Of a stretch of DNA of 64,000 nt, positions 1 to 64,000 are shown one piece after another. Positions within the stretch are counted from its first letter, which is position 1; every line of letters starts with the position of its first letter. The DNA is taken from the sequence record OP557969.1. One strand, given 5' to 3'. The translations under genes were made by a program, and so were the position numbers. The notes beneath the pieces were generated by a model, which had not been told where the DNA came from, did not search any database, and worked only from the letters and a program-made list of their open reading frames with translations.

Positions 1-2
1 AA

Positions 3-380
3 ATAATTACAGAATTTTCACCGTGGAGAACGGTTTCCAAAATAGTCAATAGGCCATTTAAAGTGGATCTCCCACAAAATCAAGATAAAATTGAAGTTAT
101 TCTTGATAGTGAGAGTCGAGTCTTTATTGATTATATTGCATATGATGATACTGAAGAGGTTTTAGAATCTGGAACAGTCCAAATTGTGGCGATTGGCTCA
201 AAGGCGATGTTTGCACAGTCTAATAACACAAATCGAAATGATGCGATTATATCTATTACATTTGAAGATCCTGCATATGATCCAACAACTGGAAATATGC
301 AATTCAATATAGTTAACTCGGATTATTTAAATGCAGGATATCATATAGAATTTGTATATCGTGGGTGGGACAAACCTTAA
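3..380 (+). CDS. 3' part of a hypothetical protein, truncated at the window edge
   Basis: The frame of track ORF 63..380 is open back to position 3, so the real start probably lies upstream of the window; stop TAA at 380. Confidence 0.7.
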   Translation: MITEFSPWRTVSKIVNRPFKVDLPQNQDKIEVILDSESRVFIDYIAYDDTEEVLESGTVQIVAIGSKAMFAQSNNTNRNDAIISITFEDPAYDPTTGNMQFNIVNSDYLNAGYHIEFVYRGWDKP

Positions 381-400
381 AAGGCGTCCCGCCTTTTTCT
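381..400 (+). terminator. Probable intrinsic terminator
   Basis: AAGGCG-TCC-CGCCTT followed by a T tract. Confidence 0.55.
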
Positions 401-443
401 TCCACTAAAAAAGTAATTTACATCAAAAAAACAAGGATGACAT

Positions 444-2762
444 ATGATTAACGTAACCAAGCGTAATGGAATGAAAGAACCGTTATCATTGGATAAGATC
501 CATCAGATTTTATTTTTCGCTGCTGAAGGTCTAAGTGGTATTTCAGTTTCTGAAATTGAACTTCGTGCACAACTTCAGTTTTATGAAGGTATTGAAACCA
601 GTACTATTCATGATATTCTGATTAAAGCAGCCGCAGAACTTATTTCAGAAGATACACCAAATTACCAATATGTTGCTGGTAGATTATTAAACTATAGTAT
701 TCGTAAGCAAGTATATGGGCAGTATGACCCGATTAAATATGCTGCTCATCTTCAAGAAATGGTTGATATCAAAATATATGATCCTGAAATTCTTGAAAAA
801 TATACTCTTCAAGAAATAGAAGAGCTTGGGCGTTATATCAAACATAAACGTGACGATAAATTTACTTATGTTGCAATGCGACAATGGGAAGGAAAATACC
901 TTTACAAAAACCGCGTTACTAAGAAAATTTATGAAACTCCACAAATGGCATATATGACTATTGCCGCAATCATTTTTATGGAGTATGATCGTTCCGTTCG
1001 TATGTCATATGTTAAAAAGTTTTATGATGCAGTAAGTAACTTTGACATTAGTCTTCCTACACCTATTATGGCTGGTCTACGTACAAACACACGTCAGTTT
1101 AGCTCTTGTGTAGTTCTAAATGTTGGTGACAGCTTGGATAGTATTGGTTCATCTAACCACGCCATTCTACGTTATATTTCACGTAAAGCTGGTCTTGGTA
1201 TTAATATGGGCCGCATTCGTGCCCTAGACTCCGAGATTCGTTCAGGTGATGCAGTACATACTGGATTGATTCCGTTCATTGCAGCTACTGCTAAAACTGT
1301 TAAAAGCTGTTCACAAGGTGGTGTTCGTGGTGGAGCAGCAACTGTTCACTTCCCATTGTGGCATTTGGAATTTGATAACTTGGTAGTTCTTAAAAACAAC
1401 AAAGGAACTGAGTTTAACCGTGTACGTCAACTGGACTATTGTTTCCAAGTAAACAAAACTTTGTATCAACGTTTGGTTGATGGAAAGAATATCACGTTCT
1501 TTAGTCCTAATGAAGTTCCTGGGTTATATGATGCATTTTGCTCTGATCAAAAAGAATTTGAAAAGCTATATAAAAAATACGAATCTGACCAAAGCATCCG
1601 TAAAAAATCCGTACCTGCTGTTGAAGTATTCAGTACTCTAATGACTGAGCGTGCAGAAACTGGTCGCATTTATATTCAAAATATTGACCATGCAAACACA
1701 CACTCAACCTTTATTGAATCAATTGCACCAATTGAACAATCCAACTTGTGCCAAGAAATTGCACTACCATCTGTACCATTTGATGATATTAATACAGGTG
1801 AAGGTTTGATTAGTCTATGTACTTTGAGTGCAATCAACTGGGGTAACTTTGATCGCCCAGAAGATATGGAAACTGCATGTGATCTTTCTGTACGTGCACT
1901 TGATTCTCTATTGGACTATCAAGACTATCCAGTGGTTCATGCGGATCGTGCAACAAAAATGTACCGCCCGTTGGGTGTTGGTATCATTAACTTTGCATAC
2001 TTCCTAGCCAAACGTGGGTTACGTTATAATGAGGAAGCATTAGAAACAGTTAACGAGTGGGCTGAAGCATGGTCTTATTATCTAATTAAATCTTCTGTAC
2101 AGCTTGCCAAAGAAAAAGGTAAGTGTGAAGGTTTTGACACATTAAAATATGCTAAAGGTATCCTTCCAATTGATACTTATAAATCTGATATGGATGAATT
2201 AGTAACTAAAGAGCTAAAACAAGATTGGAAATCTTTGCGTGAAGATATCAAACAATATGGTATTCGTAATGCTACAACTATGGCTCTAATGCCAGCAGAA
2301 ACAAGTGCACAAATCAGTAACAGTACTAACGGTATTGAAAAACCTCGTTCTCTTGTAACAAAGAAACTATCAAAAGATGGTATTCTGAAACAAGTAGTTC
2401 CTGAAATCAATAAGTTGAAAAACAAATATGATTTACTATGGGAACAAAAAGATAACATTGGCTATCTACAAATTTGTGGTGTTCTACAAAAATACATTGA
2501 TCAAAGTATCAGCGTTAATACCAGTTACAATCCAGTACATTTCCCTGATGGAAAGTTACCAATGTCAACTCTCCTAACTGAGCTTATGTATGCATATAAA
2601 GTAGGGCTTAAGAACCTGTACTATCATAATACCAATGACGGTTCGGATGAAGTAGATGTTGAAAAAGTACTCAAAGAAGCATCTAAACCAGAATCAGGGC
2701 AGTTTGTGTTACCTACATTACCTGACTTGGATGAAGGTGATTGTGATAGTTGTAAAATCTAA
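444..2762 (+). CDS. nrdA: Ribonucleoside-diphosphate reductase class Ia, alpha subunit
   Basis: N-terminal ATP cone (VTKRNG), SSCVV, QSNLCQEI thiyl-radical motif, GLKNLYY, C-terminal CDSCKI; uninterrupted. Confidence 0.98.
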   Translation: MINVTKRNGMKEPLSLDKIHQILFFAAEGLSGISVSEIELRAQLQFYEGIETSTIHDILIKAAAELISEDTPNYQYVAGRLLNYSIRKQVYGQYDPIKYAAHLQEMVDIKIYDPEILEKYTLQEIEELGRYIKHKRDDKFTYVAMRQWEGKYLYKNRVTKKIYETPQMAYMTIAAIIFMEYDRSVRMSYVKKFYDAVSNFDISLPTPIMAGLRTNTRQFSSCVVLNVGDSLDSIGSSNHAILRYISRKAGLGINMGRIRALDSEIRSGDAVHTGLIPFIAATAKTVKSCSQGGVRGGAATVHFPLWHLEFDNLVVLKNNKGTEFNRVRQLDYCFQVNKTLYQRLVDGKNITFFSPNEVPGLYDAFCSDQKEFEKLYKKYESDQSIRKKSVPAVEVFSTLMTERAETGRIYIQNIDHANTHSTFIESIAPIEQSNLCQEIALPSVPFDDINTGEGLISLCTLSAINWGNFDRPEDMETACDLSVRALDSLLDYQDYPVVHADRATKMYRPLGVGIINFAYFLAKRGLRYNEEALETVNEWAEAWSYYLIKSSVQLAKEKGKCEGFDTLKYAKGILPIDTYKSDMDELVTKELKQDWKSLREDIKQYGIRNATTMALMPAETSAQISNSTNGIEKPRSLVTKKLSKDGILKQVVPEINKLKNKYDLLWEQKDNIGYLQICGVLQKYIDQSISVNTSYNPVHFPDGKLPMSTLLTELMYAYKVGLKNLYYHNTNDGSDEVDVEKVLKEASKPESGQFVLPTLPDLDEGDCDSCKI

Positions 2763-2767
2763 ATAAA

Positions 2768-2787
2768 AATCCCGCTTCGGCGGGATT
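2768..2787 (+). terminator. cUUCGg-capped hairpin between nrdA and nrdB (terminator or mRNA-stabilising)
   Basis: AATCCCGC-TTCG-GCGGGATT. Confidence 0.6.
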
Positions 2788-2816
2788 AATCTTTCCGAAT
2801 ATTTAAAGGAATATAT

Positions 2817-3977: not shown

Positions 3978-3989
3978 TATGGAATTTTT

Positions 3990-4157
3990 ATGAGTGATAT
4001 TTTTACAATTGAGCGTAATGTTATCTATGACTTCTACCTAACTGGTGGATTTAAGGTAACTGGTGCGGTATCTGATGTTTGTCCAAATGGACTTGTACTG
4101 GTCGATGGTACTAGAGTTGTTCAGGCACATATTGTTATGTTTGTACCAACCAAATAA
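3990..4157 (+). CDS. 55-aa Sm/Hfq-like protein (below the ORF-track cutoff)
   Basis: MSDIFTIERNVIYDFYLTGGFKVTGAVSDVCPNGLVLVDGTRVVQAHIVMFVPTK; resembles Hfq Sm1 (IYLVNGIKLQG) and Sm2 (VYKHAISTVVP); GGA RBS. Confidence 0.55.
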   Translation: MSDIFTIERNVIYDFYLTGGFKVTGAVSDVCPNGLVLVDGTRVVQAHIVMFVPTK

Positions 4158-4163
4158 AAATTT

Positions 4164-5593
<1,430 letters not shown>

Positions 5594-5597
5594 TAAA

Positions 5598-5624
5598 AAA
5601 GGAGCAACATATTGTTGCTCCTTT
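5598..5624. terminator. Bidirectional terminator between convergent genes
   Basis: AAAGGAGCAACA-TAT-TGTTGCTCCTTT. Confidence 0.8.
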
Positions 5625-5627
5625 AAC

Positions 5628-9791
<4,164 letters not shown>

Positions 9792-9853
9792 AAAAACTAA
9801 ATGCTATACATAAATATTTTTTTGATTTTTAATAATAAATAATCAAGAGTGTT

Positions 9854-10444
9854 TTGTATTATGGAGAAGAATATACAATGAACAATTTACTACAAGTATT
9901 TAAAATTGAAGTTGCAGGGACAAATCTAGATAATATTCCATATTATATGTATGGTGATTATGATTCGTCTTCCACTACGACTGCACCGACAGATCAGCAG
10001 ACAATTGATAAGTCAGTTGCATTATTGCGTTACCTACAGCTATCTCGTCTGTTATCTACTTATACTGTACCAGTATACAGTACTGTTGAATTTGAGATCC
10101 CAGGAACTGCAAAAACAATCCCAACTGGTGCGACAATTACTGTTGGTTACATTAGTTACGAGCCATTTCTTAGTACACTAAGTGCCACCGAGCAAGCAGC
10201 ATTAAGTACTGAAGAAATGAAAACAGCAAAAGCCGCTGAGATTATCCAAACACTAATCAATGATTCATTGAAAGGTGATGGCACTAATGCAATGGTAAAT
10301 GAAGAGATCACCGTACAGAAAACTATCAATCGCAGTAAGGACGCACTTAGTACAAGTACTGTTGATTTTATTGAATATGAGAACGTGTATCTAGATGTTC
10401 CGTCTGTTACTGACGCATCGGTAGTATCTTACGTTAAACTATAA
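9854..10444 (+). CDS. Hypothetical protein, possibly virion-associated (likely start 9878)
   Basis: ORF track; GGAG RBS before ATG 9878; TAAATA motifs upstream. Confidence 0.7.
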   Translation: MYYGEEYTMNNLLQVFKIEVAGTNLDNIPYYMYGDYDSSSTTTAPTDQQTIDKSVALLRYLQLSRLLSTYTVPVYSTVEFEIPGTAKTIPTGATITVGYISYEPFLSTLSATEQAALSTEEMKTAKAAEIIQTLINDSLKGDGTNAMVNEEITVQKTINRSKDALSTSTVDFIEYENVYLDVPSVTDASVVSYVKL

Positions 10445-10467
10445 TTTTATAACATGGAGTTCTTGAC

Positions 10468-10662
10468 ATGACTAACAAAACATTTTATGATCGTATTATT
10501 GAAGACAAGGGAGTTTTTGATAAGGTAGTTTATGACTTAGAACTTATGATCAAAGACGCACCGAATCCAAGAGTACGAACCCAAGCAGAGTTTGCAAAAA
10601 CTTATCTTGTTCAAGTACAAGCAATTTGTGAAGCAATCAAAAAACATAATGATAGTGCTTGA
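10468..10662 (+). CDS. Hypothetical protein
   Basis: ORF track; GGAG RBS. Confidence 0.7.
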   Translation: MTNKTFYDRIIEDKGVFDKVVYDLELMIKDAPNPRVRTQAEFAKTYLVQVQAICEAIKKHNDSA

Positions 10663-10687
10663 CAGAACAAAAGTTCTATCCTATAAT
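10659..10687 (+). promoter_or_regulatory. Consensus sigma70 promoter driving the IF3 gene
   Basis: TTGACA-N17-TATAAT. Confidence 0.85.
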
Positions 10688-10731
10688 TACTATCGAACAA
10701 CACATTAAAATCATATTGGAGTTTTTATTAC

Positions 10732-11794
<1,063 letters not shown>

Positions 11795-11805
11795 AATATA
11801 AACTT

Positions 11806-13973
<2,168 letters not shown>

Positions 13974-13974
<1 letters not shown>

Positions 13975-14765
13975 TGCCTAGTAAAAGCAAAAGTCAAGCC
14001 AAATTCTTTGCTATCGCAGCACATGATCCAGAATTTGCAAAGAAAGCGGGAATTTCACAAAGTACTGCGAAAGAATGGAATACCGCAGATGAAAAGGAAG
14101 GAAATCTTAAAAAAAGTTCTAAACTTCCTAATAAGGTAAAAGAATCAAGTATGCGTGGTTTGGTAGATATAGTAAAAGATGCAGAACTTGCTGATGATAC
14201 AAAAGAAGAACCATGTGATATAATTGATGAATCTGATGATATTGAAAAGTTGGAAGAAATGCCACAACGATTTGATAGTTTTCAAGGTCAAGACCGAGAT
14301 GAGTTTGTCGATAAAACTGCCAAACTAACTGGTAAACATAACATGGTTAAGTTCGCAGAACATAAAGACTATGATGTGTATATTAATAAAAACGGTTCTG
14401 GATTTATCGCTTATGATAAGTCTGGTAAACAGCTTGCTGTCGTTAGTGGTCATTTATCTAATGATGCAGTTCTTGGTGTACAAAATGTATTTGAGATTGC
14501 AGCCACTGCATCTAAAACTGGCACTAAAGGTATCATCTATAACATCTTTATGGATATGGTTGCCCATGGCATTAAAGTGCTAAGCGATAGTTTACACACA
14601 GATGATGCAATTAAATTCTGGACGCGATTGATTGGCTCACATCAAGTTTATGTTGTTGGTGGTGGAGAAGTTCTTTCAAAGGCGAGTCCAGATAAGATTC
14701 ATAAGTACTGGAGTGATGATGAGTCAAGTCCAAGTGCTGAACTTCAACTTATGTTAGTGAAATAA
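13974..14765 (+). CDS. Hypothetical protein, possible C-terminal GNAT-like fold
   Basis: ORF track; C-terminal pattern GIIYNIF..VLSDSLHTDDAIKFWTRL. Confidence 0.7.
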
Positions 14766-14858
14766 TACATCGGGGCATTTTGTCCCGATATTTTTTGAGA
14801 CAATAATCACATTGGTGATACAATGTTTTGTGACAAAGAGACATGATAAGGAATTCAA

Positions 14859-16823
14859 ATGGCTAAGAAAGAAAGTGCTGTCCTACAGGAACATGATGTT
14901 CAACGACTAAACGATTATCAACATGCTCGTTTACGTACTGAGATGTATCTCGGTTCTCGTTCAGTACATGAAAGTCAAGTACTGATTTTTGGTGAATCAG
15001 GATATGAAGTTAAGAACGTAGAATGGGTTCCTGCAATTCTTACTGCTACGCGTGAAATTATTGATAATAGCTTGGATGAATTTAAAAAAGCTGGAACTAA
15101 AGAACCTGTTTTGAAAGTTGATTTCAATGAAGAAGAACTATCATTTGAGATTAGTGATAATGGTCGTGGTATTCCGATTGATTATGTTCCAGAGTATCAA
15201 AAAAACCTATGTACAATGGTAATGACTGAAACAAAAACAGGTCGTAACTTTGACGATTCAAAACGTGATGAAACTATTGGTCAGAATGGTTTGGGTGGTT
15301 CAGTTGCGATGATTGTTAGTTCTAAGGCAGAATTGGAAATTCATCGTCAAGGTCGTCCATATAAAACACAAAGCAGTAATGATGGTTATGATGGGTTTTA
15401 TAAGTTCAATCAGAAGTTCGAAGAAGGAACTATTATGTTCCCTGAACTTCATGTACATGAACCTACAATTAGAAAGGTACAAACCGATAAAACTGGAACA
15501 ACAATTCGTTTTACATTGAGCAAAGAAGTTTTTCCAAATAGAAAATTACCTACTGAATTACTTTACAGTATTCTTAAAGAAATGGCAGCCGCAAACCCGA
15601 CTTATAAAATATTTTTGAATGGTAAACGTATTGTCATTAAAGGTAATACAGAGAAAGCATTGTTCAATGCATCGAAATTAATGCAGTTGCATGTTAAAGA
15701 TGATTCATTCAATTTTAACAGTACTTTTTATATTGTTCCTAATGCAGTATCTAACATGAACACCAACTTTCATATGCATGGTTTGGTTAACAATGCACCT
15801 GCTTTTGATGGCGGTACACATCTTGACACATTTAAAAAATTCTTTTCTTTGGGTGTAGGAGCAGCACTAGAGAAAGAATCCAAGAAACGTAGAATGAAAC
15901 CAAACCGTTCTGACATTGAAGAAGGATTGTTGATTTATAACGTCACGACTATGAAAGCACCTTCATTCAACTCACAGATTAAATCTAAACTAACAAATGA
16001 AAATGTAATTCGTCCTATTCAACAAGCAATGAGTTCTGAGTGGTTTGATGAATTGGTTAAGAAGAATAAAGAGTGGGTTGATGAAATTTTTGAACGCTGT
16101 GCGGCCCGTACTAATAAGAAAGATGCTGAAGAAGATCGCCGTTTGGCTAAAAAGCTTCTAAAAGGTAAGGTTGCAAAATTACTTGATAGTACTGGTACTG
16201 ATCGTTCACAGTGTATTTTATTGATTGCAGAAGGTGACTCTGCTATTTCCAACATGGCAAGTGCTCGTATACCAAGTATTCATGGGATTCTACCATTGCG
16301 TGGAAAGATTATGAACGTCAGTGGTTCTGAAAAGACCAAAGAATTAATGGATTCGATGGCATTGCATGACATAATGGCTAGTATCAATTTAGTACCAGGA
16401 GTTAAAGCTGAACGAGCAGACCTGAACTATGGTAAGCTTTATATTTGTGCAGATGAAGATGAAGATGGTAAGAATATCGGAGCATTAGTGTGTAACTTCC
16501 TGTTCAAATTCTGGCCTGAATTGTTCCAAGATCCAGAAAATCCATTTGTGTACATATTCAAAACTCCATTTATCATTCTAGAGAAAGGTAAGGAAACAAA
16601 ATACTACTATGGTCATGACGTACATGAATACAATCCTGACGATTGGAAAGGTTGGAAAGCAACTCGTGCAAAAGGGCTTGGTACGTTAGAAAAATCAAAC
16701 TTCCGCGACGCATTCACACATAGTGTTGCAGTAGCAATCACGGATGATGGACGTCTTGGTGAAACTCTTGATTTGATTTTCAACAAGAAACGTGCAGATG
16801 ACCGCAAGAACTGGATGGAATAA
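14859..16823 (+). CDS. Type II DNA topoisomerase large subunit (gp39+60 / GyrB-like)
   Basis: GHKL motifs EIIDNSLDE, DNGRGIP, GQNGLGG; Toprim motifs AEGDSA, PLRGKIMN, DEDEDG. Confidence 0.95.
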   Translation: MAKKESAVLQEHDVQRLNDYQHARLRTEMYLGSRSVHESQVLIFGESGYEVKNVEWVPAILTATREIIDNSLDEFKKAGTKEPVLKVDFNEEELSFEISDNGRGIPIDYVPEYQKNLCTMVMTETKTGRNFDDSKRDETIGQNGLGGSVAMIVSSKAELEIHRQGRPYKTQSSNDGYDGFYKFNQKFEEGTIMFPELHVHEPTIRKVQTDKTGTTIRFTLSKEVFPNRKLPTELLYSILKEMAAANPTYKIFLNGKRIVIKGNTEKALFNASKLMQLHVKDDSFNFNSTFYIVPNAVSNMNTNFHMHGLVNNAPAFDGGTHLDTFKKFFSLGVGAALEKESKKRRMKPNRSDIEEGLLIYNVTTMKAPSFNSQIKSKLTNENVIRPIQQAMSSEWFDELVKKNKEWVDEIFERCAARTNKKDAEEDRRLAKKLLKGKVAKLLDSTGTDRSQCILLIAEGDSAISNMASARIPSIHGILPLRGKIMNVSGSEKTKELMDSMALHDIMASINLVPGVKAERADLNYGKLYICADEDEDGKNIGALVCNFLFKFWPELFQDPENPFVYIFKTPFIILEKGKETKYYYGHDVHEYNPDDWKGWKATRAKGLGTLEKSNFRDAFTHSVAVAITDDGRLGETLDLIFNKKRADDRKNWME

Positions 16824-16873
16824 TATAGGCTAATGGGGGACATTGTGTTCCCCTTTTATAAAGAGACAATGGA

Positions 16874-18286
16874 ATGGCTAAAAGTAAAAAAACAGAAAAT
16901 CATAATATCGATAACCAAACGCTAACTCTACTAGATTATAACAGTTCTGATTATGTGAATACCACATCATTAGAGTATTCAATGTACACACTAGATCGTG
17001 CAATTCCAGGCATTGACGGTCTAAAGAGTTCACAACGAAAAGCAATTTTCACATTATCTAAAATCAGTGGTGAAATTAAAACAGTATCATGTGCTGGTAA
17101 AATGATCAGTGATGGTATCTATCTTCATGGTGACACATCTGCATCAGGAACACTTCAGAACTTAGCATCACCAGTAGCCAATAATTATCCACTAATAGGC
17201 AAACGTGGTGGTTTTGGTACACAAGTAAACAGTACACCAGCATCTGCTCGTTACACATACGTGAAGAAGAATAAGAGTACTGAGATGCTTGTTTTGCGTG
17301 ATGTAGATATTATTCCAATGAAAGAGAACTATGACGGTACAACATACGAACCAGTTCATTTCTTGCCTATCATTCCATTATCATTGTTTGGTAATGATAG
17401 TATGTCAGTTGGTTATAAGAGCACAATTCTACCACATAAAATTGAAGATATTATTGATAACTGTATTCGTGCTATTGATAAAAAACCACTAAAAGAAATG
17501 ACCCCATATTATGTTTCATGTGGTGCAAGTGATGTAGTAACCAAGCTGGATGAAAACAAGTACGAGTTCTATGGTAAAGCACAAGTCATTGATGCAAGTA
17601 CTGTTAAAGTAACAGGATTACCACCTAATTATGGTATTGAGAAGTTCATTGAAAAACTGATCAAAATGAGTGATGATGGGGAAATTCGTGATTATGACAA
17701 TAACAGTACTGATGTAATTGATATTACAATTAAACTTCCACGTGGAACTTCAGCTAAATGGACAGAGATGGATGTTATTGAGTATTTTGGTATTAACAAA
17801 AAAATAACTCAACATTTAACTGTTCTTGGTGAAAATGGTAAAGTAAAAGTTTACGATACTACTATGGATTTGATTAAAGACTTCGTGGATTTTCGTTTCA
17901 AATATTATATCAAGCGTTATGAAAAGAAACTTGATGATTGTGCCGCTGAGGTTCGTTATAAAATTCTAATTAAAGAATGTTTCGATAATGATATGATTGC
18001 GAAAGTAAAAGGATTTGCAAACCGTACCGAAATGGTTAATTTTGTTAAGTCGTTAAATACTGAAATTGAAGCATCTGACGAGAATATCCAAAGTATTGTT
18101 AACTTCCCATCATATCGCTGGACACAAGATAACTACCAATCAGTACTGCAAGATATTCAAGACAATCTAGAATTGATGGATAAGTACAATGAATTACTAT
18201 CCAACCATGATCTGATTTGGGATATTTATAAATCCGAACTTAAAGAACTAAAAAAGATTGATTTCACACCTAAATCTGATAATTGA
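16874..18286 (+). CDS. Type II DNA topoisomerase medium subunit (gp52 / GyrA-like)
   Basis: RAIPGIDGLKSSQRK, YLHGDTS, catalytic ASARYT. Confidence 0.95.
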   Translation: MAKSKKTENHNIDNQTLTLLDYNSSDYVNTTSLEYSMYTLDRAIPGIDGLKSSQRKAIFTLSKISGEIKTVSCAGKMISDGIYLHGDTSASGTLQNLASPVANNYPLIGKRGGFGTQVNSTPASARYTYVKKNKSTEMLVLRDVDIIPMKENYDGTTYEPVHFLPIIPLSLFGNDSMSVGYKSTILPHKIEDIIDNCIRAIDKKPLKEMTPYYVSCGASDVVTKLDENKYEFYGKAQVIDASTVKVTGLPPNYGIEKFIEKLIKMSDDGEIRDYDNNSTDVIDITIKLPRGTSAKWTEMDVIEYFGINKKITQHLTVLGENGKVKVYDTTMDLIKDFVDFRFKYYIKRYEKKLDDCAAEVRYKILIKECFDNDMIAKVKGFANRTEMVNFVKSLNTEIEASDENIQSIVNFPSYRWTQDNYQSVLQDIQDNLELMDKYNELLSNHDLIWDIYKSELKELKKIDFTPKSDN

Positions 18287-18327
18287 TATATTTAATGGAA
18301 GACCCAATGGGTCTTCCTTGTCCTTTA

Positions 18328-18335
18328 TATAAATA
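18328..18335 (+). promoter_or_regulatory. T4-type late promoter
   Basis: TATAAATA upstream of a large structural-type gene. Confidence 0.6.
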
Positions 18336-18346
18336 ATCTATAGATA

Positions 18347-20767: not shown

Positions 20768-20768
20768 T

Positions 20769-21080
20769 ATGTTTAATCCATTTTTTGACCCGTCTGGGAT
20801 GACGGATAAAGAATTACAGTTAAAAATCAACGAGCAATCATTACGTTTGACATCTGCACGTGCGGCTGGTATGAGTGATATGATTATTGGTAATATGCAA
20901 ATGGTGCTAAATCAATGTTATGCTGAACTAGAACTTCGCCAGGGACATAAAGAGAAAAATGTTTATGATGAAGAAGACCCGTGTATCTTCGACATGGACT
21001 CGTATCTAACTGACAACGAAGAGGCTCAGAAGAAGAAAAATGAAAGTACAAGGAAACAGATTTATAAGTCCCAATGGTGA
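20769..21080 (+). CDS. Hypothetical protein
   Basis: ORF track; AGGAG RBS. Confidence 0.75.
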   Translation: MFNPFFDPSGMTDKELQLKINEQSLRLTSARAAGMSDMIIGNMQMVLNQCYAELELRQGHKEKNVYDEEDPCIFDMDSYLTDNEEAQKKKNESTRKQIYKSQW

Positions 21081-21558
21081 TGTGAAATGTAATCTTAATG
21101 CAGTTGTTTATGCAATCAACTGTGGTGCAGATATCCAGTACTTACAATTACAGGAAATCGATGAACCTGAAAGGTTAAAATTCAATGATAACTGTAAAAA
21201 ATTTGGTTTAGAGCAACGTATGCTGGATTATACCATTGAACATGATAAAAATCATGAACTTTGGCGTTATGATCCAGTATATGATAATATAAATCTACGT
21301 GACTTTTTTTTACAAAAGTGTACATCTGATGAAGCACGAACACGTGTTGAGTATGAGCTTGAATTATATGAATATTATAATATGACAAAACTATTAAGAT
21401 GTATGATCTGGCTCGTTGATTACATGGAAGAACATGAAATCTTTTGGGGTCTGGGGCGTGGAAGCTCTGTTGCATCATATTGCTTATACTTGATTGGACT
21501 ACATATGGTAGATTCATTGAAGTATGACCTTGATGTGAACGAATTTTTGAAATGGTAG
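21040..21558 (+). CDS. Truncated DNA polymerase III alpha (DnaE)-like protein
   Basis: RVEYELELY, GLGRGSSVASYCLYLIGLHMVDSLKYDL..EFLK matches DnaE [35 protein letters not shown]; the protein ends before the catalytic PDxDxD. Confidence 0.8.
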   Translation: MKVQGNRFISPNGDVKCNLNAVVYAINCGADIQYLQLQEIDEPERLKFNDNCKKFGLEQRMLDYTIEHDKNHELWRYDPVYDNINLRDFFLQKCTSDEARTRVEYELELYEYYNMTKLLRCMIWLVDYMEEHEIFWGLGRGSSVASYCLYLIGLHMVDSLKYDLDVNEFLKW

Positions 21559-21622
21559 ATAAACATGTGATATAATGTGTATTGTAGTTATTATATCACA
21601 CATAAAATAAAAGGATTTTGAT

Positions 21623-21967
21623 ATGTCTAAACATACAACTTATCGTGGTACAACAATTGACATGGATATGCTCAAGTACCAAAATCAACACCAGGTAGCA
21701 TTGGGTAATGCAAATCTAAATGCACGTGGTGATAAAATTGGCTCAGGTGGAACAATTATCAAAACTCGTGAAGAGTTACTTCAAGAAAAAGAACGTGAAA
21801 TGCAAATTCCTGATTTTATTCCTGAACATCAACTTCATAGTACTGAACATAGTACTGAAGAAGTATGGGATGATGAAAGCTTTGAAGTTATGCCCGAAGT
21901 AAAAGAAGCTGAGGTTTCTGAAGAAAAGAAAGCCCCACGTCGAGCAAGAACTAAAGAACAGGAGTGA
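21623..21967 (+). CDS. Conserved-type hypothetical protein of large myoviruses
   Basis: ORF track; ALGNANLNARGDKIG..G.IIK motif; acidic tail. Confidence 0.75.
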   Translation: MSKHTTYRGTTIDMDMLKYQNQHQVALGNANLNARGDKIGSGGTIIKTREELLQEKEREMQIPDFIPEHQLHSTEHSTEEVWDDESFEVMPEVKEAEVSEEKKAPRRARTKEQE

Positions 21968-22302
21968 TGTGTCAAATGACTAATAAAGTAATGACTGCAT
22001 GTAAAGGTAAAGTTCTAGTAACTGATCTGGAACATGGTGAACGTAAAACAGCAGGTGGGATCGTTTTAACGAACGATGATGGCAAAATCAGGGGCATTCG
22101 TTCTCGCTGGGCAAAAGTCTATTCGGTCGGTGAAGACATTACTGATATTAAAGAAGGACAATGGATTTTAATCGATCACGGTCGATGGTCAAGAACTATT
22201 GAAGTTGATGGCATTGAATTGAACTTGGTTGATTACCCTGCTGCTGTTAGTTTAGTATCAGATGAAGATCCAAGAACAAAAATGCTAACCTTTGGACGTT
22301 AA
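21964..22302 (+). CDS. groES: GroES/Cpn10-like co-chaperonin
   Basis: KVLV..ERKTAGGIVL..AKVYSVGE..DIKEGQWIL. Confidence 0.85.
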   Translation: MMCQMTNKVMTACKGKVLVTDLEHGERKTAGGIVLTNDDGKIRGIRSRWAKVYSVGEDITDIKEGQWILIDHGRWSRTIEVDGIELNLVDYPAAVSLVSDEDPRTKMLTFGR

Positions 22303-22359
22303 CAAAAAATCAATTGAAGCTCGGATAGAAATCTGGGCTTTTTATTTGGACAAAAAATA

Positions 22360-22629: not shown

Positions 22630-22652
22630 CACGTACACAGAAGGAAATACAC

Positions 22653-39300: not shown

Positions 39301-41181
39301 ATGAAACCTATCCGAGTACTATCTCTTTTTAATGGAATGAGTGTAGGATACATGGCATTAAAAGATGCTGGTATCCCTGTTGAAAAATATTATTCATCCG
39401 AAATTGACAAATTTGCTATAGCTGAATCCCAAGCTAACTTCCCCGATATAATCCAATTGGGTGATGTAACTAAGTGGAGAGAATGGGATATTGAATGGGA
39501 CAAGATAGATCTACTGATGGGTGGTTTTCCATGCTTCCCAGCAGGAACTATGATAATGACAAATAAAGGTCATAAAGATATAAAAGATATAAAAATTGGT
39601 GATATGGTTCTTACACACACTGGACAGTACCAAAAAGTATTGAGTACTGGTGTTAAAAAGGCTCCCACTCGTATTATTACGGGTCAAGGTCACCTTCCAA
39701 TTGAATGTACCGATAATCATCCATTTTGGAGTAGGGAACGTCTAGCCAATAAATGGAATAATCAACGCCGAAGATATGATTCTGTGTTTTCTGAACCGCA
39801 ATGGGTAAATGCTATAGATCTTACTAAACAAAGTTATATTTGTAATGTTAAAAATATTACACATAATACTGTAAGTGATAAAGATGAAAAATATTGGTAT
39901 TTTGTTGGTCGTTTTATGGGTGATGGATGTGCTAGTGTATCTAATAACAAATACAGTATTACTATTGTAGATTCATTAGATAAAGTTGATGAATTGAAAA
40001 AATGCTTTGATGATTTTGGATACAAATACACATTAGCTATTAAAGATAATCATGTAAGATGTGATATATATAGCAAAAAGCTTTATGATGAATTAATATG
40101 TATTGGGCATAAATCACAAAACAAATGTTTACCACCTGAAATATTCAATGAAACTATCAATAACAAAGAAGCATTTATTAAAGGATACATGGATGCAGAT
40201 GGTTGTGAGGATAAACACAATAAAAAATACAAATTTACCACCACAAGTTATAAAATAGTTCTTGGTATGCAACAGTTAATCTTAGATACTTATCAAAGTC
40301 ATTGTACTATTAGCCAAACTGTTCCAAAAACAAAAAAATATATAAAAAATAAGTTGGTTAATCAGCTTCCGTATTGGAATGTTCATTTTAGCTATAATAA
40401 AATTAAAAGAGATGATGTAATATATGATGAAATTTATATATGGAATCGTGGTGTAAAAAGTAATGTACCAACCGGAGAATGGAAAACCGTTTACAATATT
40501 GAAGTTGCAGTAGATAACACATATACAGCGAACAATATTGTAGTTCATAACTGCCAAGCGTGGTCAGTTGCAGGTAAACAGGGTGGAATAAATGATCCTC
40601 GTGGTATGTTATTCCATACAATGGTTGATATTTACCAGCACATAAAAAGTCTCAATCCAGACTTGAAAGTACTGTTCGAGAATGTTAAAATGAAAGAAGA
40701 TTTCAAGCAATACATTAATAGTGTTCTTGAGATGACACCAGTACTGATAAATTCCCAGCATTATACGCCTCACTTCAGGCAGCGATATTACTGGTACAGT
40801 ACTGATAAACTTTTTATACCACCTGCATTATCCAATGCACCTAAACTTCAAGATATTATTGAAGATGGTTGGTACACTGACAGAACCGCTTCGTACTGTA
40901 TAGATGCTAACTATTTTAAGGGTGGTGATTGTAACCAGTACTTTAATAAATCAAGAAGACAAATTGTTTTCAAAGAACCTGATATCGATAGGGATTTCCT
41001 TCTTGAACATGGTAAGCGAAATGTGGACTATCGTCATTTAACAGTACAAGAGTGTTGCATGTTGCAAGGAATTGATGTAAACTACTTCAAAGTTAGTAGT
41101 TCAACACAAGCATACAAAATGCTTGGGAATGGATGGACTATGCCAGTTATATCACACTTACTACGAGATATATTCTTTTGA
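39301..41181 (+). CDS. DNA (cytosine-5) methyltransferase containing an intein
   Basis: Motif I SLFNG, motif IV GGFP/C split by the intein, VI FENVK, VIII RQRYYW, IX RHLTVQEC, X LGNGW; 286-aa extein. Confidence 0.93.
   Translation: MKPIRVLSLFNGMSVGYMALKDAGIPVEKYYSSEIDKFAIAESQANFPDIIQLGDVTKWREWDIEWDKIDLLMGGFPCFPAGTMIMTNKGHKDIKDIKIGDMVLTHTGQYQKVLSTGVKKAPTRIITGQGHLPIECTDNHPFWSRERLANKWNNQRRRYDSVFSEPQWVNAIDLTKQSYICNVKNITHNTVSDKDEKYWYFVGRFMGDGCASVSNNKYSITIVDSLDKVDELKKCFDDFGYKYTLAIKDNHVRCDIYSKKLYDELICIGHKSQNKCLPPEIFNETINNKEAFIKGYMDADGCEDKHNKKYKFTTTSYKIVLGMQQLILDTYQSHCTISQTVPKTKKYIKNKLVNQLPYWNVHFSYNKIKRDDVIYDEIYIWNRGVKSNVPTGEWKTVYNIEVAVDNTYTANNIVVHNCQAWSVAGKQGGINDPRGMLFHTMVDIYQHIKSLNPDLKVLFENVKMKEDFKQYINSVLEMTPVLINSQHYTPHFRQRYYWYSTDKLFIPPALSNAPKLQDIIEDGWYTDRTASYCIDANYFKGGDCNQYFNKSRRQIVFKEPDIDRDFLLEHGKRNVDYRHLTVQECCMLQGIDVNYFKVSSSTQAYKMLGNGWTMPVISHLLRDIFF
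39532..40551 (+). mobile_element. 340-aa intein with LAGLIDADG homing endonuclease
   Basis: Block A CFPAGT, block B CTDNH, LAGLIDADG boxes VGRFMGDG and IKGYMDADG, block F VYNIEV, terminal VHN followed by Cys. Confidence 0.93.
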
Positions 41182-51606: not shown

Positions 51607-51722
<116 letters not shown>

Positions 51723-51729
51723 CAAAAGA

Positions 51730-51803
51730 CGGGGTATAGCACAATTGGATAGTGCAAGAGAATTCTAATCTCTAGGTTGGGGGTTCAAGTCCCTCTACCT
51801 CGG
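51730..51803 (+). tRNA. tRNA-Arg(TCT), CCA not encoded
   Basis: CGGGGTA/TACCTCG, AGAGA-ATTCTAA-TCTCT, GGTTCAAGT. Confidence 0.88.
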
Positions 51804-51827
51804 CCTACTTTAATTAAAGGTTAAACC

Positions 51828-51992
51828 ATGACGCATGAAGAATGGATGAATGACATTAATTTTAGATATGCAGGTATCGGTAACTGGAGAAAGTATCATT
51901 GGGAAATCATATCAGACCCAGCAGAATACGATAAACTTATGAATCATGAAGTGTATCCGTGGTTCTTTATTGAAATAATGGTACGATTATGA
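51828..51992 (+). CDS. MTHxEW-family microprotein (54 aa), tandem copy 1
   Basis: MTHEEWMNDINFRYAGIGNWRKYHWEIISDPAEYDKLMNHEVYPWFFIEIMVRL. Confidence 0.7.
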   Translation: MTHEEWMNDINFRYAGIGNWRKYHWEIISDPAEYDKLMNHEVYPWFFIEIMVRL

Positions 51993-52149
51993 CACATGAA
52001 GAATGGATGAATGACATTAATTTTAGATATTCGGGTATCGGTAAATGGCTAAAGTATCATTGGGAATTCATTTCAGAGCCACATCTGTATGATAAACTTA
52101 TCAACGATTCTGCATATAAAATGTACTTAATTGAACTACTGGTACGAAT

Positions 52150-52153
<4 letters not shown>
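51989..52153 (+). CDS. MTHxEW-family microprotein (54 aa), tandem copy 2
   Basis: MTHEEWMNDINFRYSGIGKWLKYHWEFISEPHLYDKLINDSAYKMYLIELLVRI. Confidence 0.7.
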
Positions 52154-52322
<169 letters not shown>

Positions 52323-52325
52323 AAG

Positions 52326-52770
<445 letters not shown>

Positions 52771-52798
52771 GTATCTTAATAACAGAAGGTATATTGAA

Positions 52799-53038
52799 AT
52801 GAGTAAGTATTTTGTGAGTTATAGTTATAATGTATCACGAAAGATTCCACGTGGTGACGGAATGGGATGGTCTTATGATGCATATACTTTAAATGAGTCA
52901 TGTATCATCGAATTAAAAGAAAAAGACCTTGACATTTTAAAAATCAAACAATATATTCTTGATGTTGAATTGGCACATCGTACTGATATCTATCCAGATG
53001 TAAATAACATCAGCATCTTAGTACTAACCAAAGTATAA
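52799..53038 (+). CDS. Hypothetical protein
   Basis: Track ORF 52769..53038; GAAGG RBS before ATG 52799. Confidence 0.65.
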   Translation: MSKYFVSYSYNVSRKIPRGDGMGWSYDAYTLNESCIIELKEKDLDILKIKQYILDVELAHRTDIYPDVNNISILVLTKV

Positions 53039-53044
53039 GATAAA

Positions 53045-53078
<34 letters not shown>

Positions 53079-53084
53079 GAATTC

Positions 53085-53425
53085 CACAATCAGACGTATA
53101 TGGTGTAAGTTACGTCGATGCAATCCAGAACAAGATCTCTGGTACTCTAGGAAGTGGTTAATGTTAACCTAGACGGGTTTGATAATTGGACGATAGGCAA
53201 TTATTACTTGACTAGCAGGTTTAAACTAGAGGTGACTATCCTTCACCAAACTGGAAAACCGGATGGACTTTTATTTAAAAGGGTAAGGCGTGGAAATATG
53301 TTTACAGTAGTTGCTTTTAGTAGCCTGTACGCCCCACGTCAAGGTAGCCGAAAGGCAAGTTAAAACGGGTGGTTATAAAGCTGAATTAACAGCGGCGTTT
53401 AAAAGCGTCACCATCCATTTTTTTT
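53085..53425 (+). ncRNA. Candidate ~340-nt structured ncRNA
   Basis: Own promoter, at least ten helices, GAAA tetraloop, possible kissing loops, terminal three-way junction and U tract, no RBS-backed ORF. Confidence 0.65.
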
Positions 53426-53441
53426 AATTAAAGTTGGTGAT

Positions 53442-54080
<639 letters not shown>

Positions 54081-54153
54081 CTTTTTAATTTAAAAGTACT
54101 TTACTGTAGTGTTTAGTACCGTATAATGTAAACAAAAGGATAAAATAAAACTC

Positions 54154-54678
<525 letters not shown>

Positions 54679-54700
54679 TTAAAAAATCAGTACTTTATTA

Positions 54701-54914
<214 letters not shown>

Positions 54915-54917
54915 TCA

Positions 54918-55085
<168 letters not shown>

Positions 55086-55106
55086 TTCACATGATATAGG
55101 GTACAC

Positions 55107-55364
<258 letters not shown>

Positions 55365-55380
55365 ATAAAAAGAACGAAAA

Positions 55381-55645
<265 letters not shown>

Positions 55646-55653
55646 AATTGACG

Positions 55654-55704
<51 letters not shown>

Positions 55705-55721
55705 TACAACCGACAATGACT

Positions 55722-55788
<67 letters not shown>

Positions 55789-55963
55789 GAAGAAACTGCT
55801 AAACAGCTTGAAGAACTTTGTAGTGCTGCACCGATGCCGACTCTTGGCTTAATCAAGTTGATGCGTCGAAATAAGAAAAATTTAAAATAATACAGTAAGA
55901 TGGCCTCCCCTCCATATCATGAGAGTATAGAGACTTGTTGGTTATCTTACTTTTAAACAAACT

Positions 55964-56037
55964 GCCTCAATAGCAAAATTGGTAATGCACACGTTTTGTA
56001 AGCGTGAGATTTTTCCGTTCGAGTCGGAATTGGGGCA
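55964..56037 (+). tRNA. tRNA-Thr(TGT), CCA not encoded
   Basis: GCCTCAA/TTGGGGC, CACGT-TTTGTAA-GCGTG, TTCCG-TTCGAGT-CGGAA. Confidence 0.88.
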
Positions 56038-61903: not shown

Positions 61904-61906
61904 AAT

Positions 61907-62823: not shown

Positions 62824-62835
62824 TAGTGTTATAAT
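62807..62835 (+). promoter_or_regulatory. Consensus sigma70 promoter
   Basis: TTGACA-N17-TATAAT. Confidence 0.85.
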
Positions 62836-62867
62836 CACAAGACCAACCGATAAAAGAGGAACTGAAA

Positions 62868-63326
62868 ATGGACGTATTGGCTACCAATTTCAAACGTAAC
62901 ACAGAAGAGCGTGAAGGATACCTTAGTATTAGTGATGTAGTTGCTGATAACTTCAAACAATACATTTTTAATAGTGCGATTAAGTTAAAATGCACAAAGG
63001 ATGCTCCAGACCGTAGTTTTACTAAATGGATTGCATATTGGGAAGATTCACCAATTGCAATTGAAATGACAGTTATTACAACAGTTCTGGAAACGGGATA
63101 TATCAAAGCTATTGTAGTTGATAAGAAAGTCAGATCTCTTGATGAAATTAACCCATATCCAGCCCGAAATTCTAAAGTTTTTGGGTTTTTGGTTGAAGGT
63201 AAGTTTATGATTGAAAAAGATGCAAAAGAATATGTAATTAATATGCTACAAACACCAACCGAGAAAAAAAAGGTCGTTGACCAGAATGCTATTGATTCAA
63301 TCAAGAAAGCATGGGGACTTAAGTAA
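62868..63326 (+). CDS. Hypothetical protein
   Basis: ORF track; GAGGA RBS. Confidence 0.75.
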   Translation: MDVLATNFKRNTEEREGYLSISDVVADNFKQYIFNSAIKLKCTKDAPDRSFTKWIAYWEDSPIAIEMTVITTVLETGYIKAIVVDKKVRSLDEINPYPARNSKVFGFLVEGKFMIEKDAKEYVINMLQTPTEKKKVVDQNAIDSIKKAWGLK

Positions 63327-63750
63327 CATGTTCACACTAAGTAATACAAAATATCTTTTTCTTATTAGTATTATTGGTTGGGTTATGGCTCCAGTGCTTA
63401 ATGCACTGGGGATTCCAGAGGGACACAAACTTGTCAATATTTCAGGTTTAATCCAAGCTATTTCGTGGTATTCATTAATCATATTTTTTGTGTGTATTAA
63501 CACATTTGCACGCGAGTATCGACGCTTACTTTATTTTAAAGTTTTCGGAACTACATACTATAGTTTTCTTTATACATTTATTTTAGTTCCATGTGTAGTA
63601 TATGCCTTTGTTTATGATTACTATACATATATGTGGGTGTGTAGTACAATGTTTGTTATGTTAGAATATACAAGAACTGTTCAAAACTCATATGCAGAAG
63701 AGTTTCATGATCAAGAAGTTAAACGCAAATTAACGGAGCTAAACAAATGA
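63277..63750 (+). CDS. Multi-pass membrane protein (likely start 63328)
   Basis: ORF track; four hydrophobic segments. Confidence 0.65.
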   Translation: MTRMLLIQSRKHGDLSNMFTLSNTKYLFLISIIGWVMAPVLNALGIPEGHKLVNISGLIQAISWYSLIIFFVCINTFAREYRRLLYFKVFGTTYYSFLYTFILVPCVVYAFVYDYYTYMWVCSTMFVMLEYTRTVQNSYAEEFHDQEVKRKLTELNK

Positions 63751-64000
63751 GAGTATATAATAAAATTTGTATTTTTGTATTTTTAGTTTGTGCGTTCAAT
63801 TCCTTTGGTTATTACTGCAACGAAAACAATATTTCATATGGATTAAATCCTTTGTGGTTTTCAATTTCAAATGTAGTTCAAATTGGTATTGCTATTATGT
63901 CTGCCCTTATGTTCTGTCCAATTGTCACAATGGATACTGATCATGAAAGGCTTGGATTTATCCGTGATACTGGTGACGAACCTTACAGTAGATTGATTGT
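63747..64000 (+). CDS. Membrane protein, truncated at the window end
   Basis: ATG 63747 overlapping the upstream stop (ATGA), GGAG RBS, frame open to 64000. Confidence 0.6.
   Translation, partial: MRVYNKICIFVFLVCAFNSFGYYCNENNISYGLNPLWFSISNVVQIGIAIMSALMFCPIVTMDTDHERLGFIRDTGDEPYSRLI

Follow-up and report, generated by a model that had tools for sequence, protein, structure and literature searches.

The stretch of DNA examined here, 64,000 nucleotides in length and referred to as the window, corresponds with identical sequence to positions 248001-312000 of the genome of Escherichia phage ph0011 (OP557969.1). The phage is a myovirus of the genus Asteriusvirus with a genome of 348,217 bp, and belongs to the 121Q/PBECO4/RaK2-like group of T4-related jumbo phages. 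Besides genes of replication and nucleotide metabolism, the window contains a tRNA cluster, the gene for a C5 cytosine methyltransferase and numerous small genes whose function is unknown; 92% of it is coding, and almost all genes lie on the plus strand. Dispersed across these genes and the DNA between them are copies of the palindrome AGTACT (Table 1), the subject of this analysis. As far as the literature search shows, enrichment of this word is undescribed, and in the full-text literature no description was found of either AGTACT enrichment or total GCGC absence in these phages.

Over the 64,000 bases the exact count is 126 copies, which makes the excess stronger than was claimed in a preliminary description of this DNA, where about 120 copies had been tallied by hand. 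The expectation from mononucleotide composition is 21.5, in agreement with the figure of about 22 given there. Markov models predict 14.7, 25.6 and 46.2 copies at orders 1, 2 and 3, respectively, and shuffles of the window that preserve dinucleotides gave 14.95 ± 4.05 (at most 26). By frequency AGTACT ranks third among the hexamers of the window. In the whole ph0011 genome it is the most frequent hexamer of all, ahead of AAAAAA, with 748 copies versus 118 expected (6.35-fold; 2.15 per kb).

The 126 sites comprise 111 within coding sequences (CDS), 14 in intergenic DNA and one on the edge of a gene. All three reading frames are used, AGT-ACT accounting for 62 CDS sites, xAG-TAC-Txx for 22 and xxA-GTA-CTx for 27; the examples quoted earlier for these frames (600, 33948 and 2666, respectively) were assigned correctly. 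Against the 111 observed, shuffling synonymous codons yields 29.9 ± 5.0 sites and shuffling codon order 18.4 ± 4.1. The strictest null, a third-position shuffle that keeps the protein, the codon usage and every dinucleotide, yields 68.4 ± 5.1 with a maximum of 89 (z = 8.3). As the observed number lies above all three coding nulls, codon choice and amino-acid choice are both bent towards AGTACT. The preliminary description had proposed that its claim be abandoned if the enrichment vanished under nulls of this type; it persists under the Markov, codon-shuffle and dinucleotide-preserving nulls alike.

Selection on AGTACT sites and the anatomy of the motif

Comparison with related phages shows that individual sites are kept. 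Between ph0011 and 121Q, which are 87% identical at the nucleotide level, 61 of the 85 aligned sites are intact, versus 47.5% of all hexamers, and between ph0011 and A4 the corresponding figures are 19/41 and 23.8%. Each of these genomes also has private sites, and AGTACT therefore turns over at constant density. Even at ~62% nucleotide identity, 12 of 40 window sites recur at precisely the homologous codons in Cronobacter phage GAP32 (versus 10.1% of hexamers), while Munch has 9 of 44 (11.1%) and XbC2 8 of 42 (9.7%) in common with the window. Site conservation is 1.5- to 3-fold over background and reaches other genera. Further, within sites the synonymous third position of TAC is kept in 12 of 12 cases versus 52% elsewhere (p = 0.0013), and that of GTA in 16 of 17 versus 66% (p = 0.015). 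No significant synonymous protection was found in the AGT-ACT frame, because AGT and ACT are both favoured codons already. No palindrome is more over-represented than AGTACT (4- to 7-fold) in 121Q, A4, GAP32, Munch or XbC2, and in the last three it is also the top hexamer by z-score.

Collectively, AGTACT does not arise as a by-product of protein sequence, codon use or base composition. It is under both positive and purifying selection, and that this selection acts at the level of DNA to keep the word is practically certain. The earlier view that the excess is not driven by proteins is thereby upheld by the coding nulls, by site conservation and by the frame-specific flanks described below, which mark the excess as a property of the DNA under selection.

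Density varies along the genome. AGTACT occurs at 1.5 per kb in genes on the minus strand and at 1.2-1.4 per kb in the late and replication genes of the plus strand, and is densest in early regions of small genes, where it reaches 2.4-4 per kb, with ~6 per kb across the first 20 kb. A motif acting at the RNA level was ruled out, as the density is equal on either gene strand and the flanks are symmetric.

The complete motif is an 8-bp palindrome, CAGTACTG, whose 6-bp core is strict and whose outer pair is soft. It has 168 copies in ph0011 versus 3.35 expected, a 50-fold excess. Across the whole genome the flanks act on AGTACT enrichment multiplicatively and symmetrically: CAGTACT followed by a base other than G, and AGTACTG preceded by a base other than C, are each enriched 7- to 11-fold, while GAGTACTC is enriched merely 1.19-fold. 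The core is considered strict and the shell soft because one-letter deviants of the octamer are enriched mainly at the outer two positions (7- to 11-fold), versus 0- to ~7-fold at the inner six. The base adjoining the core is C in 43%, A in 28%, T in 18% and G in 10% of sites, and against frame-specific backgrounds C at -1 and G at +1 are preferred in all three frames as well as in intergenic DNA. Farther out the sequence shows just a weak symmetric preference for A/T, and G occupies the third position from the core in only 16% of sites. An extended form of the motif, the 14-bp perfect palindrome ATTCAGTACTGAAT, is present twice in intergenic DNA, in the two places (~55392 and ~55513) where longer palindromes had been noticed. 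Taken together, the two-fold symmetry, the strict core and the graded symmetric flanks point to recognition of the motif either by a protein that is itself symmetric (dimeric) or by a restriction-modification-type enzyme. Sites are spaced along the genome in a Poisson-like manner (coefficient of variation 1.1), and no preferred site-to-site distance was found other than a weak 20-bp class that stems from promoters.

Two further candidates for the identity of the motif were tried and rejected. For a LexA (SOS) box, CTGT-N8-ACAG, pairs of sites 18 bp apart show no excess (2 versus ~1.6 expected), and the base preferred after AGTACTG is A rather than T. An origin of GTAC from GCGC by double deamination is at odds with the numbers, 31 AGCGCT being expected versus 748 AGTACT, and with the purifying selection on the sites.

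AGTACT had also been seen in the spacer of a five-copy promoter, and both the five copies and the placement within the spacer are borne out. The promoter is of the sigma-70 type, TTGACT-N16/17-TATAAT (TAAAAT in the 53809 copy), and matches 10-11 of 12 consensus positions; its copies begin at 52327, 52739, 53050, 53809 and 54701. In early sigma-70-type promoters AGTACT at -20 to -15 supplies the TG of an extended -10 element, often with a second copy overlapping the first T of the -35 element. A fixed position of this kind is found in the five-copy promoter and in about 40-60 early promoters. Such contexts hold less than ~10% of AGTACT copies; more than 90% are intragenic or outside any promoter. 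The five near-identical promoters are interspersed in the tRNA cluster, which spans 51636-56037 of the window and encodes three tRNAs for Ser as well as tRNAs for Arg, Ile, Asn and Thr.

A second recurrent word of the genome is the recombination signal Chi of E. coli, GCTGGTGG, with 18 plus-strand and 6 minus-strand copies versus 1.1 expected on each, none of them in the window. Half of the plus-strand copies, nine in number, fall within the first 24 kb (genome positions 3978-23321), the probable terminal-repeat and early region. The close relative fEgEco12 carries direct terminal repeats of 21 kb (PMC13070987).

Table 1. AGTACT sites and associated features of the window (window coordinates)
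Feature	Position	Strand	Remarks
Dispersed AGTACT array, 126 sites	1..64000	none	~1 per 508 bp, Poisson-like spacing; preferred flanks give CAGTACTG
AGTACT in nrdA-like gene	2322..2327	none	Homologous codon position in 121Q, A4, GAP32, Munch, XbC2
Two AGTACT in Dda-like helicase gene	8712..8770 (8712, 8765)		Both in A4, GAP32, Munch, XbC2; 8765 also in 121Q
Deeply conserved AGTACT in helicase gene	9654..9659		Common to 121Q, A4, GAP32, Munch, XbC2
Deeply conserved AGTACT	14704..14709		Common to 121Q, GAP32, Munch, XbC2
Deeply conserved AGTACT, topoisomerase II large-subunit gene	15720..15725		Common to 121Q, A4, GAP32, Munch, XbC2
Deeply conserved AGTACT, topoisomerase II medium-subunit gene	17597..17602		Common to A4, GAP32, Munch, XbC2
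C5 cytosine methyltransferase, DNMT3-like, intein-interrupted	39301..41181	+	Not considered the enzyme that acts on AGTACT
Promoter copy 1	52327..52354	+	AGTACT (52342) in spacer, adjoining -10 element
Promoter copy 2	52739..52766	+	AGTACT at 52754
Promoter copy 3	53045..53078	+	AGTACT at 53045 overlaps first T of -35; AGTACT at 53065 gives extended -10 TG; 20 bp apart
Promoter copy 4, upstream of tRNA-Ser	53804..53837	+	AGTACT at 53804 and 53824
NUMOD4-HNH endonuclease in tRNA cluster	54154..54678	+	Weak homologues (33-35% identity) in some AGTACT-rich prophage loci
Promoter copy 5, upstream of tRNA-Ser	54701..54729	+	AGTACT at 54716
Intergenic 14-bp perfect palindrome ATTCAGTACTGAAT, extended motif form	55393..55406	none
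Second ATTCAGTACTGAAT copy	55514..55527	none	121 bp downstream of first

GCGC absence and the methyltransferases

The abundance of AGTACT contrasts with the fate of other palindromes in the same genome. The ph0011 genome lacks 21 of the 64 hexamer palindromes, and four more occur just once or twice; the absent ones include the BamHI, PstI, KpnI, XhoI, SacI, SphI, NheI, PvuI and StuI sites. An avoided restriction site would be depleted, whereas AGTACT is enriched 6.35-fold in a genome from which those 21 are missing. The tetramer GCGC is absent as well (0 versus 282 expected in 348 kb; 0 versus ~46 in the window). Relatives show the same pattern of purging, and GCGC is absent from every sampled relative (loci including L003, L004, L005, L006 and L013). 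The rV5-like coliphage PHB05 has undergone a comparable purge of partly different words; AGTACT itself is one of those it lacks (0 versus 11.9 expected), and its GCGC count is normal (32 versus 40). Ten ordinary restriction enzymes cut DNA of the relative fEgEco12 in the predicted way (PMC13070987), which shows that it is not globally hypermodified.

GCGC absence is strictly coupled to AGTACT richness. The AGTACT-rich elements have no GCGC in any 2-kb bin, with the exception of one bin of a single locus (L033), while the host DNA flanking them has no AGTACT and 5-23 GCGC per 2 kb. A sample drawn independently of any methyltransferase, consisting of IMG/VR stretches with two CAGTACTG copies at most 30 bp apart, gives the same result. 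When loci with at least 7.4-fold enrichment and at least 10 sites are counted as strongly AGTACT-rich, 36 out of 36 such loci lack GCGC, with 1.7-30.6 copies expected in each, versus 0 of 39 among the loci without AGTACT richness; five weakly rich loci contain GCGC. A 50-kb piece of E. coli K-12 contains 3 AGTACT (11.6 expected) and 342 GCGC. For both words, these elements are the mirror image of the host. The three AGTACT copies of that small K-12 sample (L015; at 21310, 28275 and 40280) all have C at -1, and two are CAGTACTG.

The preliminary description had tentatively tied the palindrome to the C5 METHYLTRANSFERASE at 39301, as a methylation or repair mark. The gene does lie in the window and is conserved in the lineage, with 73% identity in GAP32 and 64% in K64-1. 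The tie does not hold up in other respects. The intein-free orthologue (286 amino acids) aligns end to end with the catalytic domains of DNMT3A/B/C, and the enzyme is DNMT3-like with a short target-recognition region. By bisulfite sequencing, the DNA of the relative RaK2 was reported to carry 5-methylcytosine in CpG (PMC3622015); AGTACT contains no CpG. Further, PHB05 encodes a C5 enzyme 51% identical to that of ph0011, yet has no AGTACT, and by tblastn no C5 methyltransferase is common to ph0011 and the AGTACT-rich prophage loci. The C5 enzyme is very probably not involved with AGTACT, and hardly any credence can be given to the proposal that it writes the mark. The gene is interrupted by a LAGLIDADG intein of 340 amino acids (window 39532-40551), inserted at the catalytic Cys of motif IV (GFP|C...HN|CQAWS) and absent from the orthologues of 121Q, PBECO4, GAP32 and K64-1.

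What stands of the methylation idea fits another gene better. Outside the window, ph0011 encodes two further methyltransferase-like proteins, a small Dam-type protein (PF05869) and a protein of 278 amino acids at genome positions 334458-335294. As a candidate for the AGTACT enzyme, the former has its sole close homologue in 121Q and distant ones in loci that are not AGTACT-rich. The latter has the layout of an orphan gamma-class N6-adenine (N6A) methyltransferase, in which motif I (EPxxGxGxF) comes before motif IV (NPPFG) and the C-terminal region is variable. Across 20 homologues the residues E41-P42-x-x-G45-x-G47-x-F49 and N97-P98-P99-F100-G101 do not vary. The family profile matches METTL5 and M.TaqI in the PDB, and homologues carry PF26055 (Mtase_EDM2).

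Homologues with 54-71% identity occur in GAP32, an uncultured jumbo phage, an island of Citrobacter farmeri and temperate prophages with a serine recombinase, a GpA-type terminase and an HK97-type capsid, the prophages being found in Pseudescherichia, Leclercia tamurae and metagenomes. All of these loci are AGTACT-rich (for example 55 versus 4.0, 89 versus 6.3 and 98 versus 6.4 expected); CAGTACTG is enriched in them up to 150-fold, and the sites end at the border with host DNA. In a tree of 87 homologues, the 13 AGTACT-rich loci (6- to 17-fold) form one clade with an SH-aLRT support of 99, and the two nearest outgroups have no AGTACT at all. Among the IMG/VR loci with homologues of at most 43% identity, 0 of 73 are AGTACT-rich. 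A tblastn comparison of the prophage and island loci with the whole ph0011 genome returned only the N6A methyltransferase and the weak NUMOD4-HNH match. As the clade would be useful only where AGTACT is abundant, it is best read as a putative AGTACT-specific protective methylase, with something else selecting the sites; judged by where the gene occurs, the candidate N6A METHYLTRANSFERASE follows the motif and does not cause or maintain AGTACT. The orphan enzyme probably shields AGTACT, and that it specifically targets this word and protects the sites from ScaI/Eco255I-type enzymes we consider rather likely.

Several side observations concern this family and its surroundings. In ph0011 the gene is the second of an accessory two-gene cassette upstream of denV (genome positions 332994-335294), preceded by a gene for a DUF262/GmrSD_N protein (332994-334199); the cassette is also found in GAP32 and in one uncultured jumbo phage (L028:8641-10825; L027:8643-10825), and 121Q lacks it at the syntenic place. 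The Citrobacter farmeri island (L109:2000-14900; also L016 and L017) measures 13 kb at 34% GC and carries two serine-recombinase genes, the methyltransferase and ~20 small open reading frames. It has 47 AGTACT and no GCGC between ~2.0 and 14.9 kb, is flanked by an insertion-sequence element and host genes of 48-54% GC, and may be a phage satellite or a defence island. The IMG/Logan phage contig L022, with a sister-clade methyltransferase of 46% identity, contains neither AGTACT (0 versus 7.0 expected) nor GCGC (0 versus 18) and is enriched in GTTCTG (19 versus 3.7) and CAGTTCTG (5 versus 0.19), words that may be ghosts of erased CAGTACTG sites. Some other branches of the family reside in viral contigs with other hyper-abundant palindromes, namely TGATCA (35 versus 3.6 expected), TCGCGA, GCCGGC and CGATCG (L063, L049, L059, L071, L072, L066 and L035), and many loci with distant homologues are strongly depleted of GTAC (for example 5 versus 57 and 0 versus 36).

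A candidate identity mark and its rivals

On the explanation we favour, AGTACT is a signal in double-stranded DNA, held at very high density by natural selection. Richness in AGTACT and freedom from GCGC would form a two-motif identity code common to unrelated AT-rich mobile elements of Enterobacterales. The code would mirror host DNA, which is AGTACT-poor and GCGC-rich, and machinery encoded or recruited by the element could use it to tell its own DNA from that of the host or a competitor. In ph0011 the N6A enzyme would methylate AGTACT and thereby shield ~750 sites of the ScaI/Eco255I type. This explanation as a whole, a selected identity mark together with a shielding N6A methylase, is adopted tentatively, its being correct seeming to us almost as probable as its being wrong. 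The identity-mark function of the AGTACT abundance, taken by itself, is possible but somewhat doubtful.

A broader version extends the code to element-run recognition of self and non-self, shared by unrelated elements of Enterobacterales with 2-7 AGTACT per kb and no GCGC. The set would include jumbo phages of the RaK2 type together with small integrative islands and temperate phages of ~33 kb. A nuclease directed at GCGC might, for example, destroy host and competitor DNA, which has ~7 GCGC per kb, while AGTACT might recruit or license a factor friendly to the element. In some members AGTACT would be methylated by the dedicated orphan N6A enzyme, paired in jumbo phages with the DUF262/GmrSD_N protein. 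On balance, we regard this broader version as unlikely.

A number of points weigh against the favoured explanation. One concern is that neither a protein reading AGTACT nor a GCGC-directed nuclease was found; likewise, no candidate was found for the phage DNA-organising protein that the preliminary description had imagined bound to AGTACT. A genome free of GCGC needs no additional mark of self against a GCGC nuclease, which leaves the AGTACT half of the code unexplained. Further concerns relate to the N6A enzyme. Its supposed target is taken from where the gene occurs, the literature searches having turned up no methylome, and the family has a likeness to RNA m6A methyltransferases as well, METTL5 being one. 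In 50,697 phage records, a homologue of at least 60% identity is present in ph0011 and GAP32 only, orthologues within Asteriusvirus usually being 84-94% identical, and 121Q lacks the 278-amino-acid gene at the syntenic place upstream of denV. Since 121Q, A4, Munch and XbC2 are as AGTACT-rich as ph0011 and most AGTACT-rich relatives lack the methyltransferase, methylation cannot explain the abundance in general; some 20 other AGTACT-rich contigs, each of ~30 kb, also lie outside the methyltransferase matches. Finally, the prophages were covered within 10 kb on either side of the methyltransferase, and the comparison with host composition covers 50 kb of E. coli.

The same body of evidence bears on the rival explanations. 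Were AGTACT the site of an Enterobacterales-wide host protein (a nucleoid-occlusion factor, a topoisomerase or another nucleoid protein) that the elements recruit, with the methyltransferase merely a shield, the identical motif and flank preference in unrelated elements would follow, as would the facts that these elements share by sequence search only the methyltransferase and that all named hosts are Enterobacterales. We know of no other host factor with an AGTACT-type site than SlmA. The SlmA site GTGAGTACTCAC has an AGTACT core too, although SlmA needs G, T and a purine at positions 1-3 (PMC3020112), while the phage sites favour C and disfavour G next to the core and the entire ph0011 genome has not one match to GTRAGYRCTYAC. 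Moreover, the elements are compositionally opposite to the host for both words, and mimicry of the host is for this reason unlikely; the contrast speaks for discrimination from the host instead. We rate recruitment of a host protein as rather improbable. Slightly less probable still is a molecular drive of the type proposed for highly iterated palindromes (HIPs), in which a cognate methyltransferase and biased mismatch repair make and keep the palindrome and the sites need no function. Such a drive accords with the strict inner hexamer and the end-clustered deviants of CAGTACTG, with a methyltransferase clade confined to AGTACT-rich genomes, with other clades of the family in contigs hyper-abundant in TGATCA and TCGCGA, and with AATACT (0.90) and AGTATT (1.16) being the least enriched among the transition neighbours. 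However, most AGTACT-rich genomes keep density and site positions over deep divergence without the methyltransferase clade, no Vsr-like gene is present among the ph0011 annotations, the carriers replicate by unrelated machinery (T4-like versus temperate and host-dependent), and an adenine methyltransferase yields no drive based on deamination.

Two other rivals assign AGTACT to the phage's own enzymes or regulators. An operator or promoter element, bound by a phage regulator at early promoters (for instance for early shut-off) with intragenic copies being incidental or decoys, has a precedent in TF1 of phage SPO1. It draws on the position of AGTACT at -20 to -15 in the five-copy promoter, the second site at -40 to -35 in two of the copies, the density peak in the first 20 kb of early genes and the fusion of AGTAC to a TTG(A/C) -35 start, which occurs 39 times on the plus strand, 24 of them in the first 25 kb. 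It is nonetheless quite improbable: promoter contexts hold only the small share of sites given above, intragenic sites are conserved and protected at synonymous positions, and temperate prophages, which are regulated differently, carry AGTACT throughout their structural genes. That the motif is the action site of a jumbo-phage replication enzyme, either the T4-type topoisomerase II with its 4-base stagger (CA/GTAC/TG) or the primase, is very improbable. The dyad symmetry around a 4-bp GTAC centre, the presence of the phage's own topoisomerase II in the window and the high conservation of these enzymes across the lineage would suit it. Yet prophages and the 13-kb island, with no topoisomerase II or T4-type primase detected in the stretches read, show equal or stronger enrichment with the same flanks, and type II topoisomerases normally need no strict hexamer. 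Since temperate phages and the island share the motif, enzymes specific to jumbo phages (topoisomerase II, T4-type primase, phage sigma factor) are unlikely readers of AGTACT. Least credible of all is the view that the excess is an artefact, produced by biases in codons, dipeptides or neighbouring bases or arising as other palindromes were purged. AGT-ACT (Ser-Thr), a pair of favoured codons, does make up half of the coding sites, and the order-4 Markov expectation for the window is already 94; that model is inflated, AGTAC and GTACT being enriched mainly through AGTACT itself. The excess exists in all frames and in intergenic DNA and survives the strictest null, and an artefact leaves the symmetric flanks, the site conservation and the recurrence in unrelated elements unexplained. 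A codon or dipeptide artefact in particular is ruled out by the three coding nulls and the frame-specific flank analysis.

Regardless of the mechanism, a genuine restriction site is here the commonest hexamer in a 348-kb genome that has been purged of a third of the other hexamer palindromes. The same word, the same flanks and the same absence of GCGC in unrelated elements point to an undescribed system of recognition for the DNA of mobile elements. This raises the questions of what reads the motif, whether jumbo phages tell self by sequence words as opposed to base modification, and what purpose HIP-type palindromes serve. In practical terms, phage-therapy candidates of Asteriusvirus carry ~750 ScaI-type sites, which bears on host range, and AGTACT density together with GCGC absence sharply delimits the borders of prophages and islands in enterobacterial genomes.

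Comparison with known systems

AGTACT is a genuine type II recognition sequence (ScaI/Eco255I), and phage genomes are known to avoid short palindromes. Restriction-site avoidance is thus visible in the hexamers missing from ph0011, and the neighbouring rV5-like phage PHB05 avoids AGTACT completely. For AGTACT in ph0011 the pattern is the opposite, with the hexamer enriched 6-fold, the octamer 50-fold, and the sites under purifying selection.

The SlmA-binding sequence GTGAGTACTCAC is alike in its AGTACT core and in being a palindrome read by a dimer, with copies dispersed along the chromosome; its half-site has G, T, a purine, A and G at positions 1-5 (PMC3020112). SlmA sites were rejected as the identity of the motif, the flank requirements being unmet, GAGTACTC barely enriched and GTRAGYRCTYAC without a match in ph0011.

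Other parallels are Chi (GCTGGTGG, read by RecBCD) and the uptake signal and DNA uptake sequences (USS/DUS). These, too, are short words with a density of ~1 per kb or more that persist in coding DNA at a cost to codons and amino acids, and by which a protein machine distinguishes DNA of one kind from other DNA. Unlike AGTACT, they are asymmetric, orientation-dependent and cellular, and their readers are known, whereas AGTACT is palindromic, strand-independent and located in mobile elements.

The preliminary description had likened AGTACT to the cyanobacterial palindrome HIP1, GCGATCGC, and its association with methyltransferases, and the likeness is apt. Elhai (Life 2015) reportedly linked alternate HIPs to orphan methyltransferases, and the same author's model for HIP1 reportedly combines a cognate methyltransferase with biased mismatch repair. 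Both HIP1 and CAGTACTG are 8-bp palindromes that occur about once per 0.3-1 kb, in all frames and in non-coding DNA, beyond what coding explains. In each case one-letter deviants gather at the two ends of the octamer while the inner hexamer stays strict, and a methyltransferase lineage occurs only in motif-rich genomes; CAGTACTG thus behaves as a HIP in its density and excess, its independence of coding under the nulls and its outer-position deviants. There are also differences. CAGTACTG is AT-rich, and its carriers are viruses and islands of Enterobacterales, while those of HIP1 are cellular genomes. The enzyme associated with AGTACT is of the N6-adenine type, not a C5 or GATC-acting one, and is absent from most carriers. 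Finally, AGTACT is strictly coupled to the total absence of GCGC, in genomes that otherwise purge palindromes.

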